From NCBI GenBank assembly GCA_002269645.1, contig NIVC01004826.1, positions 1 to 34,101 of the forward strand: a DNA stretch of 34,101 nt. Direction: 5' to 3'. The notes beneath the pieces are model-generated. The model did not search any database, was not told where the DNA came from, and worked only from the letters and a program-made list of their open reading frames with translations. Below, piece after piece: positions 10,472 to 18,502 of this stretch. The stretch is from Macrostomum lignano (taxonomy: Eukaryota). A program made the position numbers and the translations under genes. Positions within the stretch are counted from its first letter, which is position 1; each line of letters starts with the position of its first letter.

Positions 10472-13400
10472 TCATAGGCACGTCTCAGCAGAGTCTTTGG
10501 AACTCGTGACTACATGCTGTGTTTCACCGTTGCCGACTTGCTCAGATTCCTCTGTATCGACTGTTTCAATCTCATTCTGAGCTTCCTGGGTGCCGTTCTC
10601 ATTGATTTTGCCAGTCTTGGGTTCAACGTCTTGCTTGCGCATCCGCTGCCCAACGACCATGCCGATGTAGATGAGGAGTTCGACCAGCTCGCAGACGGTC
10701 AGAACTGAGACGCCGCTCCAGAGGCCGAGGGCACCTGACACAAATTTGGAGCAACGTTTGGAATGACAAGCAGCAAGTTCATGTTTTAACTTCACTTAAC
10801 GCAGCCCATTCAGTCCATTGACAATTATTATACTGTTGTGGATATCAACAGAACAAATATCTCAGACCAGTTCTTTTAATGACTTTTTGGCTCTTGAAGA
10901 CTCACTCTAGATGTAACCTAATTTACATTTAGCAAGTAATGCACCCAACAACGAACTCACCACCAATGTCAGCAACGAGATTCTTAGCAGGATAAGCTTC
11001 TTCCTCGGTAATGTCCTCTCCAAAGGCAGACGATGCCTTTACAGTCAGCTTGGCCAGTCGGTTCTTTATGGCCTGGAGCTGATAGTCAAACTTCAGCAAA
11101 TCCGACGAGCTCATGTTGTCGCGGGTACATTCTCGACGCTCTTCGCCGAGAGGTAGGTGTGGTAGATGCTGGCTATGCCTCGAGAGTTGCTCAAATTGAA
11201 GCGGTAACCGGTCAGGGAGGCCAGGTTGGCAAGGAACTTCAGTGCATTCACCCGACTGATGACGGGCCAGGTGCGCGTAGCCTGGCGCAACACATATTTT
11301 CGAATTCGGCACTGAGACTCGCAAACGCTGAAGGTCTCCTTTTGGTAAAGAAACAAACGGGCCATTTGTCGGACATAGCATTGTTCTGTCGCATCCAGGT
11401 ACGCGACATTGCTGCTGTTGAAGCAGTACGAGTAGCGATCGAAATAGGCCTCAGGGATCGGCAACGACTCCGGTAGGCAGTTGCAGGCATCAACGAACTT
11501 CTGCACCTGGTAGGCGTAGATGCAGTCCTGGAAGCCGGAAACTTTGAACTCCATTTTTTGCTGAAATCCTCCACTGAAATTATTGTATCAGATTTTACAA
11601 TTAAGTGCAGAATTAAAGATTTGCGCTTGTTAAGAATGCATCTCTTACTCATCCTGGTTGTTTTCCAGGAGGGCTGCTTTGAGCATAGCAATTTTTTGAC
11701 TCCAATTGGCCGAAGATTGAACAAGATTTCTGGCGTCGATTTTCAGCCTGTGAAAATATTGACGGGCTGGAATACTATATAATGTAAATTATAATATTGA
11801 GTATTATGAAGGTCTAACCGGCATACTTTGTTAAATTTTTATCACGAGCGCTGGCCCAGCTAGACATCCGGTAAGTGACTGGAGCCTCTAACTTCTTGCA
11901 GGGCAGCTCCGAGCGCGAAATTTTGGTCACGCGGTCATAACGCAGTCGGATCACCACGAGCTGAGCTGGATCTACTTCAAAAGCGTACGAGGAGTCGGGG
12001 AACTCGCCTTGCGGCAGGATAATCACCTGAATCAATTCGCGGATGAAAGAAGGTGCTTAAAGCAGCATAAAACTGACTTCCTACCCAAAAGGAAACAGAT
12101 CTCAGCTTACTTCGGCTGTAATTTTGGTTTGTTACCTTCCTCATTTGCCTCATGAAGCGATTTTAGTTTATGTGTTTAGGCGTCAATTATCTACTTGCAT
12201 CTCATACAGACGGATTGAGTTATGCAGTAAGGACACGAAAATATTGTCTCAGGTTTAAGAAATTGGTCAATTTTTCTAATCTCCTTCGATTTTATTGATT
12301 TTATTGGGAATTGACTTTTTCTTTCCCTTTTCCACTCTATCCTTCGAGAGATCTTTTCACTCAGTTTGCAAGGCTTGAGTGTAAGGATTGTTGAGCTCTT
12401 ATGATCATAGAGCTCCGTTGTTCGAGGCGCTGCACCATTGCTCGCTGCCTTGCTCAGCCAATGATCACTTTTCTGGTTTTAAAGTTTGAAAAGGCTTGAA
12501 GAGTCCGGATCGTTTTCAATTATTCCAACTAACTAATCCTAAAATCTACGAATGTCGCACTAGTTTTGAGGCAGAAAACTTGCAGTCAAGCACCCTACTC
12601 AGCACAAGCACCCTAACAGTGAATTATTTTTCCAGTCTTTTTAAATTCACCTTGAGCGCATTGTTGGTTTCATCCGCCAGCATCTCATTGGGCCGGACTC
12701 CGGTCTCCAGTTTGCTTATGTTGTCGAATGCTCGTCCAAATGAGTCGGTGGCGTCAGTGAAGAATGTGATTGACAGCTCCGAGTTGGCCAGCTGGACATT
12801 GTTCATGCCAGCCACGAACCGATCTGCTTTGAAGCGGTGACACAGACCCATCTGAGGATGCAGCACATTCAAGAAGTCATCTTGCGTGCACTTCTGCCCG
12901 CCAAAACTGCATTCCGTCAGGCTGACGTCCAGATTTCTGCCGAACTGGCGTTCCAGCAGGTCGGTGCCGATGGAATGCCGGATCGCGCCTGTGATGCTCG
13001 GGCTCTCGGTGTCTTTAACCAACAAATAGAAATTCATCATTATGGGATTTTCGATAATTCTGCATTCATAGCGGGATCTGACAGTGACACCGATACTTTG
13101 CGTCCATTTTCGGTCTAAGTTCGTGCGCCCTTTTTTAGCAAAGCCCAAACTTTTCTCCTAAGTCTCCTGAGAATAGGAGATATTTTGTTTCGAATTTAGC
13201 TATGAATTAAAAAAAAAACTCACAGCACATCGGAATGCTACAGGTTCTGAACGTGTAAATGTTTTCTTCATCCGGCGTATAGACATAGCACCCGGGAGTC
13301 AGGCTCGACTCCAGAGTCCATCGAATTTTCCTGATACGAGTATATAGAGATGCAAAAGTGGGAACTTTTTTCACATTACATAACGGGATCAACAGTTATT

Positions 13401-16400: not shown

Positions 16401-18502
16401 CTTTGACTAGGCGAAGCCACAGAGTCTCTGTGTCCACCCTTGAAAGCCCCGAGTGGAAAATTGAGGGTCACTCGTACTCGATAGATTTGATTGCAGCCGA
16501 GAATTAGAATATGGAAAGCAAAAGTTTCTGGCAGTTATTATTATTTACTAGATAACTTGTTATAGTGTATTAAAAAAATAATTAAGGTACCTACCGTCGA
16601 AATCGATCTGCAAGAGACTCAGCGACAGGAGATCGTTGCTGCCGCAGACTCGGTTTTCTCCGTTGCACGTGGCGTCACAGTTAGAGGCGCTGCCAAACAT
16701 CTTCATGTTTTCACCGTCGCTCTTTGTGATGCAGTAGCAATCTGGGCTGGTCAGGCCCATGTAGACATAACCCTTTCCGTAGCAGCATTCTCTGCACATC
16801 TGGCTCGTCATGCCAGCAAAGTCATTTATGGCACATTTATAGGGTGCCGAAGCTACCGCTTTGAAATAGCAGCCAAGCTCGATTTGCAGCGGACCTAGAG
16901 AACAAATGCCGATCATATTTTTAAGTTCAATCAAGCAGGCAATACATTTTTCAGAGGAATAGTGCCTTCTCTTTCTGAGCATTCTCAATGCTCAGTGCTC
17001 AGACTCTGTGTCTTTGGATCGGCCCTCGTGGGGGCAGACCGAATTTGTCTCATGGTTCTAAAGTCGATTCTTTAGAATCGGTGCAACGACCCCTTTTTAG
17101 AGCCGGTTTTCAACCCAAAATGCACTAGTGAGATACCGGATACCAGGGAAGAATTTCCGTAAAATGGAATATATTGAACTGGCTAAAGATTCACCACCGA
17201 CTCTTACCAAACCACCCACTCACGCAAGGTGACCTGCGAGGCACATTCTGTGCCATAAAACTGGCTCTAGGAACCGAATTTGAGCAGACTCGCTACTCAC
17301 GTTTCACGTTTCACGATCAGCTTCTTGCTCAAGCCAGAAATGTATAAATATCCCCAAATTCCTGTTAAAGTTTGAATTGCGGTTTAACTTACGATACGAC
17401 CCATTCCACCACTGAGTGAGAGGGACACCCGGGGGAGCTCTGCACTTGTTGTCACTCTCTGACAGGTTTAACGCCAGAATCTGGCCGGCTTGATGGGACA
17501 GCGTGGTGTTTAGCAACAGTCGCGCAGCTCGGTTCCACTCGGTGCAGTTCTGGTAGCTCAGGTACGGCAAGGTGCTGAAGAAGCTGACGTTCGATACGAC
17601 TTTTTCTTCTCCAATGCGTTGGTAGATGGGCACAACTGAGAGGCTGCCATTGTACTCCTCACCAGCTTGGGTGATGCGACACTCGAATTGCTGTCTGCAA
17701 CGGCGTTCGGGTACGACTCCTGAATTGATAAGACCAATCAGCTTAGGTTGGGCGTGTGCAGAGCAAATTTAAATGCAGAACATTTTACTGTAGCTTCAAC
17801 CTTTAAATAGCCTAGCTAAATGTTTACTGTCACAAGCTCGTGATAAAAAGTCTTAGTAACTTTGATGCTCTGACAAGAACTAAGCAATGCTTCTAAGTTC
17901 TGAGCATTCTAGGGTTCTCCAAGAAAAAGCACTTAGTAGTCGCAGAGCTCACGGTTAACAGCCTGTCGGTATTCTTTCATCAGCGATTGCTCCGTCCCGG
18001 AAATCACGTGAAACAGCGCCAGAATCTCCGGAGTCAGTCGCAACTCAGACGGGTGGGCGCCACTTACTTTTTTCTCCATGTCAAAGGCGAAGCTGTTCGA
18101 CCAGCAGCAGTCAACTTGGGAGTTAGTTAAATACGTAGGCGAGATCCTCTCCACCATGGTGCTCATGGTGATCGCTCTGTGCGGGCACAGGTACACATCC
18201 GGAAACTCGAACGGAAGCGAGGTCGCAATGGACGTGAGCACCGGTGCGCCCATGAACCGGTCGAACAGGCTGTACAGGTGGTACGTGAAGCCGCCGTAGG
18301 TGCCCAGCAGGAAGGTAAGCCAGATGACGCGACCCAAGGTGCCCGACTGGGAAGAGAACCGGCCGAGTCCGTGAGCGGAGGTGTAGCCGCAGAAGTCGGA
18401 CACGAACTGAGTGACTTTCTGGGGCGGTGAATTTTCTTGTTGTTTGTCTTGCTTCTTCTCATCAGCCTGAAGGCCTTCCTCGGTCTGTCGCTCAGAAGCC
18501 AT
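10472..18502 (-). CDS. Large DEG/ENaC (ASIC/FaNaC-family) channel subunit with kringle-WSC-kringle insertion, 13 coding exons, about 1082 aa
   Basis: Exons: 18502-17953, 17719-17393, 17361-17301, 17266-17208, 16894-16595, 15701-15582, 14589-14425, 13554-13434, 13330-13224, 13012-12651, 12026-11827, 11573-10961, 10734-10472. All introns are GT-AG and phase-compatible; one +1 nt is needed at 11123-11125. Family motifs: FCGYTSAHGL (HG), TM1, FPDVYLC, ECSFGGQKC...GLCHRF, thumb cysteines CNC...C...C...C...C then WP, and ADIGGALGLWSGVSVLTVCELVEL (G-V-S filter). Exons 3-4 are the least certain. Confidence 0.88.
13225..14569 (-). other. Kringle-like domain 2 (exons 7-9 of the channel gene)
   Basis: DC...HYTGFRNVTVTGKPCVNW...DHNYCR...TPGCYVY...RTCSIPMC. 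All six kringle cysteines are present with the Y-x-G-x-x-x-x-T-x-x-G-x-x-C-x-x-W, NYCR, PxCY and CxIPxC motifs. Confidence 0.85.
14681..15263. repeat. (GTTA)n/(GTTC)n microsatellite in intron 6
   Basis: About 580 bp of GTTA with interspersed GTTC and a few GTAATTTA interruptions. Confidence 0.98.
15270..15306. repeat. (CTTGG)n pentanucleotide repeat adjoining the GTTA tract
   Basis: cttggcttggcctggcttggcttggcttggcttggct. Confidence 0.9.
15887..16464. mobile_element. MITE-like foldback element with TIRs of about 110 bp in intron 5
   Basis: 15887-16000 (tcaattttccactc...ggacacagagactctgtggcttcgcctagtcaaagtagtctatggcccaa...ctagaagg) is the reverse complement of about 16350-16464. No TSD identified, no ORF. 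Confidence 0.8.
16595..16894 (-). other. WSC domain encoded by one phase 1-1 exon (exon 5)
   Basis: LGCYF...MTSQMCRECCYGKGYVYMGLTSPDCYC...NCDATCNGENRVCGSNDLLS matches the WSC pattern GCY...MT...C...C...GY.Y.G....C.C...C...C.G....CG. Confidence 0.88.

Follow-up and report, generated by a model that had tools for sequence, protein, structure and literature searches.

A probable DEG/ENaC-family channel gene with kringle and WSC modules in its putative finger region in Macrostomum lignano

The window analyzed here, namely the whole 34,101-nucleotide (nt) stretch of contig NIVC01004826.1 (assembly GCA_002269645.1) from the flatworm Macrostomum lignano, very probably contains one gene for a channel subunit of the DEG/ENaC family that carries kringle and WSC modules. 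These modules form an insert of 381 amino acids (aa), encoded by exons 2–7 (17719–13224), in the order of the first three cysteines of kringle 1 (Cys1–Cys3), a WSC domain, the last three cysteines of kringle 1 (Cys4–Cys6), and kringle 2. The kringle split by the WSC exon between Cys3 and Cys4, together with the second, expanded kringle behind it, would build a disulfide-rich arm in the putative finger of the channel.

The gene lies on the minus strand, as do all of its exons given below. Three-frame translation of 18700–10300, combined with a listing of GT and AG sites and their phases, reveals DEG/ENaC coding blocks interspersed with cysteine-rich blocks, and these are joined in a model running from an ATG at 18502–18500 to a TGA at 10474–10472. 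The model comprises 12 exons and 11 introns of 52–992 nt, every intron being GT..AG with a purine at +3. An earlier reading of this DNA (the sequence-only reading) had placed the gene at 10472–18502, which fits the start and stop codons exactly, and its phase-compatible GT-AG splicing is borne out by the 11 canonical introns. Its counts require correction: the junctions are 11 and not 12, the module exons are six (2–7) and not eight (2–9), and the insert is 381 aa long instead of about 420. The twelfth junction was probably a 47-nt GTC…AG segment that is better read as a frameshift, as discussed below.

The channel core matches Pfam ASC (PF00858) with 145.8 bits against a cut-off of 23.6 (E=2.7e-42). 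Two transmembrane segments (TM1 and TM2) surround a large cysteine-rich ectodomain, and the model contains the HG motif (SAHGLGR), FPDVYLC as its form of the post-TM1 FPxVTxC motif, CSFGGQKC, a cysteine-rich thumb, and the G/S-x-S filter within TM2 (GLWSGVSVLT), so that all of the channel motifs listed by the sequence-only reading (HG, TM1, FPDVYLC, CSFGGQKC, thumb, and TM2 with GVS) are present. The HG motif, the two transmembrane segments, the cysteine-rich ectodomain, and the GxS filter are the core features shared with FaNaC, ASIC5/BASIC, ENaC, and PPK channels. With the motifs for gating and selectivity retained in the core, the protein would by default be expected to form a trimeric Na+ channel. 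In the Protein Data Bank (PDB), the channel matches FaNaC, ASIC5, ENaC-γ, PPK26, and ASIC1, the best being FaNaC (7yvb, E=2e-14) and ASIC5 (9mky).

Exon 1 (17953–18502, 550 nt, ending in phase 1) encodes the N-terminus, the HG motif, TM1, FPDVYLC, and the first ~80 aa of the putative finger, and aligns to residues 56–150 of FaNaC and 30–113 of ASIC5. After the insert, exon 8 (12651–13012, 362 nt, phase 1-0) encodes the helix before the cysteine motif, CSFGGQKC, and the putative start of the palm, and aligns to residues 190–237 of FaNaC and 175–235 of ASIC5. Because exons 1 and 8 align to both channels on either side of it, the insert follows the post-TM1 strand and comes before the helix that leads to the CxFxxxxC motif, which agrees with the site between FPDVYLC and the cysteine motif proposed previously. 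We take this region to be the finger, based on the structure of ASIC1. FaNaC has ~40 residues (150–190) between the flanking aligned stretches, whereas the window protein has ~80 residues plus the 381-aa insert. The ectodomain continues in exon 9 (11827–12026, 200 nt, phase 0-2), exon 10 (11649–11774, 126 nt, phase 2-2), and exon 11 (10961–11573, 613 nt), this last one encoding the cysteine-rich thumb, the later ectodomain, and the pre-TM2 region, and containing the reading-frame break described below. Exon 12 (10472–10734, starting in phase 1) carries TM2 with the GVS filter (GALGLWSGVSVLTVCELVELL), the cytoplasmic tail, and the TGA stop, and aligns to the TM2 region of FaNaC (521–603); both transmembrane segments have aligned counterparts in FaNaC and ASIC5.

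The insert holds 23 cysteines and nine N-glycosylation sequons, which supports an extracellular location. Exon 2 (17393–17719, 327 nt, phase 1-1) encodes the N-terminal half of kringle 1, with Cys1 in ECRIT, Cys2 in NCTEW, and Cys3 in NKCRAPPG. Exon 3 (16595–16894, 300 nt, phase 1-1) encodes the WSC domain, and exon 4 (15582–15701, 120 nt, phase 1-1) the C-terminal half of kringle 1, where GPYCFYFD…YYCGVPFC provides Cys4, Cys5, and Cys6 and aligns with a segment of a plasminogen kringle. Therefore, instead of the series kringle 1–WSC–kringle 2 described in the sequence-only reading, the WSC exon is nested within kringle 1. Kringle 2 is distributed over three exons: exon 5 (14425–14589, 165 nt, phase 1-1) with Cys1–Cys2 (HDC…YTGFRNVTVTGKPCVNW), exon 6 (13434–13554, 121 nt, phase 1-2) with the middle part and Cys3 (…DHNYCRS), whose N-Y/F-C-R motif is invariant across the channel family, and exon 7 (13224–13330, 107 nt, phase 2-1) with the C-terminal part containing Cys4–Cys6 (PGCYVY…TCSIPMC).

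For the WSC domain, Pfam (PF01822) gives 28.3 bits to exon 3 alone against a cut-off of 27.8, 21.7 bits within the full protein, and 39–43 bits in the paralogs introduced below. Moreover, the WSC profile of the family matches the WSC domain of Kremen1 (E=2e-6) and that of yeast Wsc1 (PDB code: 7pz2, E=6.5e-7). For the kringles, in contrast, the Pfam gathering score of 34.3 (PF00051) is not reached, kringle 2 (exons 5–7) obtaining 18.1 bits and kringle 1 giving no match; a Pfam scan of exon 2 alone is also negative. Profile comparisons are more informative here. Aligned with hhalign to a reference kringle profile, kringle 1 (exons 2 and 4, with the WSC domain excised) matches from Cys1 to Cys6 with a probability of 97.3% (E=2e-11) and kringle 2 with 97.5% (E=5.5e-12), whereas with the WSC module as a negative control the probability is 0.2%. 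The reference comprises 42 kringles cut from proteins matched by the insert's own profile, and a Pfam scan of three of these proteins confirmed them as multi-kringle. Against the PDB, the kringle 2 profile retrieves 52 chains, all of them kringle-containing (best E=1.8e-4), and in an exhaustive HMMER search of 1.84 billion representative proteins an insert profile built from M. lignano rows only matches multi-kringle proteins with E=1e-17 to 1e-21. Also, the six-cysteine kringle pattern C1…C2xW…(N)(Y/F)C3R…C4…C5(I/V)PxC6 is present, and 12 of 12 kringle cysteines are invariant in seven family sequences. As to size, ~125 aa (the WSC domain and a linker) separate the two halves of kringle 1, and kringle 2 is enlarged to 125–150 aa as compared with ~80 aa in a canonical kringle. 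Judged by these comparisons, both kringles are divergent yet homologous to true kringles. In the Pfam scan that had been suggested as a check of the architecture, ASC and, for exon 3 alone, WSC exceed their cut-offs; Kringle does not, and its homology is shown by profile–profile comparison instead.

Structure prediction adds to the WSC assignment. An AlphaFold2 model of the kringle 1–WSC unit of the closest paralog, P0001, was obtained from six sequences with a predicted local distance difference test score (pLDDT) of 66 and a predicted template modeling score (pTM) of 0.64; the whole P0001 insert modeled with three sequences reached a pLDDT of 30 and was unusable. Among the Foldseek matches of the unit, only Wsc1 (probability 0.98, TM-score 0.56) and Kremen1 (probability 0.91) are meaningful, with E-values of only 0.007–0.05, and no kringle match was isolated with this model of moderate pLDDT. 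The model supports the WSC fold, while the kringle is not resolved by it. Two helices (pLDDT ~90) are predicted at residues 51–72 of the model (WNxAARLL…LAxxLLALN), between Cys2 and Cys3 of kringle 1, and correspond to about 17560–17480 in exon 2 of the window. Canonical kringles are almost helix-free, and the N-terminal half of kringle 1 may be substantially remodeled according to this prediction.

The arrangement is shared by a family of paralogs in the same species. The channel part of the window protein retrieves M. lignano proteins annotated as ASC plus WSC, the best of which is P0001 (BOX15_Mlig006056g1, a PAA-series protein of 1049 aa; 43% identity in a local BLASTP alignment). Other full-length members are Mlig007204g1 (PAA82974.1, 1052 aa), Mlig006398g1 (PAA86857.1, 1033 aa), and Mlig026586g1 (PAA47210.1, 1091 aa), and cluster look-ups place the channel family at a minimum of six loci. 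The alignment with P0001 is colinear through every module. By tblastn, the channel exons 1 (43% identity, E=8e-32) and 8 (48% identity, E=2e-35) match P0001, as does exon 9, and the insert exons give E=1e-17 (exon 2), 8.5e-7 (exon 3), 6e-5 (exon 4), and 6.5e-7 (exon 5), a similarity which, as a matter of sequence comparison, is far beyond chance. The P0001 locus (NIVC01004126.1) has 13 exons. It shares 11 introns with the window gene, 10 of them with the same phase. Both loci have an exon 5 of 165 nt and an exon 9 of 200 nt, which also agree in phase, and the phases of exons 6 and 7 match as well. Hence the paralogs and the window protein are alike in TM1, FPDVY(I/L)C, the N-terminal half of kringle 1, the WSC domain, the C-terminal half of kringle 1, kringle 2, CxFxxxxC, the thumb, and TM2, as well as in their invariant cysteines and these intron phases. 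They differ in that the reading frames of the paralogs are intact whereas the window copy is frameshifted, this copy being a distinct lineage with 35–40% identity to every M. lignano paralog.

The paralogs also provide transcript evidence. The BOX15_Mlig models in GenBank are TransDecoder open reading frames (ORFs) from a transcriptome assembled by genome-guided RNA sequencing (RNA-seq) with StringTie and TACO (PMC5730564). Because these models derive from RNA-seq, the module exons are joined to channel exons at the transcript level in the M. lignano paralogs, and the question raised by the sequence-only reading, whether transcripts link the module exons to the channel exons, is answered positively for the equivalent exons of these genes. 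This bears on two alternative explanations. According to the first one, the kringle and WSC exons would be a separate gene nested in a channel intron, with the fusion being an artefact of joining reading frames. The insert exons would indeed fit one 4.9-kb intron, and nested genes are common in animal genomes. However, exon 2 has neither a start codon nor a signal peptide, exon 7 has no stop codon, and the junctions all keep phase with the exons of the channel; six or more separate M. lignano loci, and the RNA-seq-derived ORFs as well, show this order and these phases again; and among the examined proteins of the exhaustive search that cover the full insert profile, none is without ASC. Because the phases are compatible, start and stop codons are absent, and the arrangement recurs at these loci, an independent nested gene is extremely improbable and is excluded in practice.

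In the second alternative, the modules would be cassette exons, so that both a conventional channel of ~700 aa and the long form are made, the short form being perhaps the main product. Exons 2–5 and the pair 6 plus 7 are phase 1-1, which makes a cassette use of the modules possible, and the junction of exon 1 with exon 8 is in frame and yields a DEG/ENaC channel of normal length (~700 aa). Also, three proteins lack single parts of the insert: P0003 and P0004 are without the C-terminal half of kringle 1, and P0005 is without the C-terminal part of kringle 2. Nonetheless, these three are UniRef-only entries without the BOX15 GenBank tags of the RNA-seq-derived models, and their single-module gaps could reflect either mis-prediction or real alternative splicing. 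No database protein links TM1 directly to the post-insert exon; when insert-less isoforms were sought among the M. lignano proteins, the short entries turned out to be N-terminal truncations. Moreover, every module is present in four of the four full-length RNA-seq-derived M. lignano models, and the insert is kept at 32% identity with invariant cysteines across old paralogs, which points to selection on the long form. This second alternative is therefore regarded as clearly improbable, and a single gene in which the modules are part of the channel protein remains the preferred reading.

A separate issue is the reading frame of the window copy itself, which was previously described as complete. 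Exon 11 is one base short, its length being 613 nt while the flanking phases demand 614 (mod 3). The tblastn alignment of P0001 follows frame −3 down to 11123 (…SAKSVENVP) and frame −2 from 11117 (NMSSSDLLKF…), so that the ORF of the window copy changes frame between 11123 and 11117 instead of running uninterrupted through TM2; the site of the one-base frameshift can be placed at 11115–11126 on the minus strand (…VENVPA|xNMSSS…). At the P0001 locus, the counterpart of exon 11 is a single uninterrupted exon of 617 nt. If one base is added after 11120, a protein of 1084 aa with a local length equal to that of P0001 is obtained, whereas splicing out 47 nt (11137–11091) gives 1067 aa; the ~1082 aa estimated earlier is close to the first figure and departs from the second. 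The 47-nt intron was rejected because its donor (GTCGAG, with C at +3) is unlike the 11 others, it is shorter than the 52-nt minimum among the accepted introns, it removes conserved coding sequence, given that the homology with P0001 spans the segment in two frames, and it has no counterpart at the P0001 locus. Based on these alignments, the break in exon 11 is better read as a one-base indel near 11120, due either to an error of the assembly or to an inactivating mutation of very recent date.

If it were a mutation, the window copy would be a recently inactivated pseudogene truncated before TM2, the architecture of the family being nevertheless real. For this scenario, the break at ~11120 sits within an exon that is continuous in the P0001 locus, a decayed lone copy of exon 1 lies nearby, which shows that family members decay in this region, and a Pao-type retrotransposon is found upstream of the channel gene. 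On the other hand, this is a single lesion in ~3.25 kb of coding sequence, the remainder of which is intact, with no other in-frame stops and with the conserved cysteines, the motifs, and 22 of 22 splice dinucleotides preserved. Moreover, single-base indels are a common assembly error. A pseudogene is thus possible though unlikely, and the window copy continues to be read here as a channel gene with one indel in its assembled form.

Several points weigh against the assignment of a kringle- and WSC-bearing channel to this locus. The assembled ORF is broken by the 1-nt frameshift, and the transcript support comes from the models of the paralogs. An insert-less isoform produced by splicing exon 1 to exon 8 is possible. 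The Pfam Kringle score is below threshold in every family member, the best paralog reaching 22.1 bits against 34.3. The AlphaFold model is of moderate quality (pLDDT 66), it has predicted helices in kringle 1 (from Cys2 to Cys3), and all of its Foldseek E-values are above 0.001. Neither kringle has the acidic Asp-x-Asp center, CRAPPGVP and CRSVSHV being found in place of CRNPDxD; this site defines only the lysine-binding subset of kringles and not the fold, and its absence makes a plasminogen-like binding of lysine unlikely. Finally, the only other module-bearing DEG/ENaC proteins, EGAS-1 to EGAS-4, gave no current in oocytes.

Regarding the distribution of the family, in the exhaustive search no protein outside M. 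lignano covers the full insert, and the other matches cover only the WSC or the kringle part. A word-indexed search of a 5.8-billion-protein database with the window insert alone gave no match, which is a miss of the prefilter and not an absence, since the M. lignano family is recovered both by the channel part and by the insert alignment. The subfamily is lineage-specific and has to date been observed in Macrostomum flatworms alone. The architecture is already present in databases: UniProt and GenBank contain at least six M. lignano proteins annotated as ASC plus WSC, and one fragment of the family bears the name 'Kringle domain-containing protein'. In the literature searched, kringle or WSC modules are not described for any channel of the ENaC family, and the three M. 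lignano channels tested in the FaNaC study of Dandamudi et al. 2022 are other genes (including Mlig049925.g2 and Mlig051885.g1). The hint of novelty in the sequence-only reading consequently holds in one respect and fails in another, as no describing paper was found while at least six database proteins share the architecture. It is present in databases as unnamed predictions and is uncharacterised, with the kringles and the nesting missed by standard annotation. This represents an annotation gap, in which the family is filed only as 'WSC domain-containing' and its kringles escape the Pfam thresholds.

The EGAS-1 to EGAS-4 proteins of C. elegans, in which EGF modules are fused to ASC and which were correctly cited as a precedent by the sequence-only reading, are DEG/ENaC subunits with acquired extracellular protein-interaction modules that are functionally uncharacterised, no current being detected in oocytes (PMC10424705). 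However, their modules are EGF and not kringle or WSC, and they belong to a different phylum and were acquired independently; they are analogous and not homologous. In the window protein, the Pfam scan gave no EGF and no CUB match, and no EGF domain is fused to ASC. Kremen1 and Kremen2, the best-known case of a kringle paired with a WSC domain, resemble the insert in this respect, the WSC module being a significant profile match and a top Foldseek match. In Kremen1, kringle and WSC pack tightly and jointly form the face that binds DKK (PMC5014086). Nonetheless, the Kremen domains follow one another as Kringle–WSC–CUB before a single-pass transmembrane segment, whereas in the window protein the WSC domain is nested in a kringle, a second kringle follows, CUB is absent, and the whole belongs to an ion channel, so that the likeness concerns the pairing of domains only. 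Yeast Wsc1 has a WSC domain with homology to exon 3 (E=6.5e-7; probability of 0.98 by Foldseek with a TM-score of 0.56), although this protein is a fungal single-pass sensor with neither channel nor kringle. The title of PDB entry 7pz2 refers to the mechanosensor domain of Wsc1, and the WSC domain is also described as such in the literature (PMC9024836).

On these grounds, a mechanism can be outlined. The subunit would assemble as a trimer and display three kringle/WSC arms atop the ectodomain. Each arm would bind an extracellular protein or glycan, either of the matrix or a secreted ligand, and its occupancy or tension would be passed via the finger to the gate, giving a self-tethered or ligand-modulated sodium channel. 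Most simply, the arm may bind a protein or glycan outside the cell, which could modulate the gate or tether it. That the arm itself directly gates or tethers the channel would be somewhere between doubtful and possible, and a role in localisation, assembly, or anchoring without direct gating carries comparable weight. The stricter proposal, in which the arm of each subunit is an integral sensor for a secreted ligand or for a glycan or protein of the matrix, whose binding gates the pore directly via the finger, is rather doubtful. DEG/ENaC stimuli are diverse (protons, peptides, proteases, and force), much of this diversity being encoded in the finger, where other members of the superfamily receive their gating stimuli.

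It is also possible, though less likely than not, that the arm is real but non-gating, serving folding, trimer assembly, surface localisation, or anchoring to a particular site on the cell surface or in the matrix, or being shed by proteolysis, while the gate is driven by, for example, protons or peptides. The kringles are without the canonical lysine-binding residues, small ligands gate the FaNaC and ASIC5-type channels to which the core is nearest, and the EGAS proteins with their EGF modules show no module-dependent gating so far, all of which would favor this possibility. Against it, the finger receives gating stimuli in other DEG/ENaC members, and a rigid insertion of 381 aa at this place is unlikely to be neutral. 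Moreover, the kringle plus WSC of Kremen1 constitutes a tight ligand-binding unit (PMC5014086).

The surroundings of the gene contain further channel sequences, a retrotransposon, and repeats. The lone decayed copy of exon 1 (5204–5467, minus strand) lies ~5 kb downstream of the channel stop, with 65% amino-acid identity, an 8-aa deletion in TM1, and an N-terminal part for which a match requires a shift of frame; the other exons are not duplicated. At ~200–460 on the plus strand, another DEG/ENaC gene enters from the start of the window with its final coding part (TM2 region, …LADIGGLLGLYIGCSLLTLCELLELAYHL…). DEG/ENaC genes appear to be clustered in the window. The pol region of a BEL/Pao-type long terminal repeat retrotransposon occupies 20405–23867 on the minus strand, probably extending to ~27 kb, and lies ~2 kb upstream of the channel ATG; its domains (Peptidase_A17, RVT_1, Integrase_H2C2, rve, and DUF5641) are found in long open frames. 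At 27829–28761, a 465-bp unit occurs twice with 99% identity. The ORF at 27876–28316 matches a Fibrinogen_C domain over the C-terminal two-thirds of the domain (E=1e-31), and the ORF of the second copy (28341–28709) repeats the same sequence, this being either a very recent tandem duplication in a fibrinogen-related gene or an assembly artefact. Within the channel gene, intron 4 holds a (GTTA)n microsatellite of ~146 copies (14681–15263), and intron 3 holds a pair of 87-nt inverted repeats (15908–15994 and 16352–16438; 95% complementary and 357 nt apart) with the look of a foldback or a miniature inverted-repeat transposable element. Tandem repeats are located 0.5–1.1 kb upstream of the ATG (19005–19308, a 7-nt unit in 43 copies, and 19380–19601, a perfect 38-nt unit in 5.8 copies), just beyond the channel stop (10057–10147, a 14-nt unit in 6.5 copies), and elsewhere in the window (610–1185, a 15-nt unit in 40 copies, and 32443–33094, a 131-nt unit in five copies).

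As to the origin of the arm, all of the module exons are phase 1 (exons 6 and 7 as a pair), a signature of exon shuffling, and the arm apparently arose by the shuffling of phase-1 exons. The family thus offers an example of exon shuffling in which a WSC exon was placed into a kringle, a domain-in-domain arrangement that, to our knowledge, has not been described for kringles.

Finally, if the arm does act as a sensor, this would be a self-contained mechanosensitive or macromolecule-gated DEG/ENaC channel, and we know of no description of gating by an integral macromolecule-binding arm in the DEG/ENaC superfamily. For the touch channels of C. elegans, the question of the tether still depends on separate matrix proteins. 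With its built-in arm, the channel described here would be a natural experiment on the coupling of a DEG/ENaC gate to a macromolecular partner or tether outside the cell. RNA interference is in use in M. lignano. An efficient method of transgenesis has also been reported for this flatworm (PMC5730564), a tractability that opens the channel family to study in vivo.

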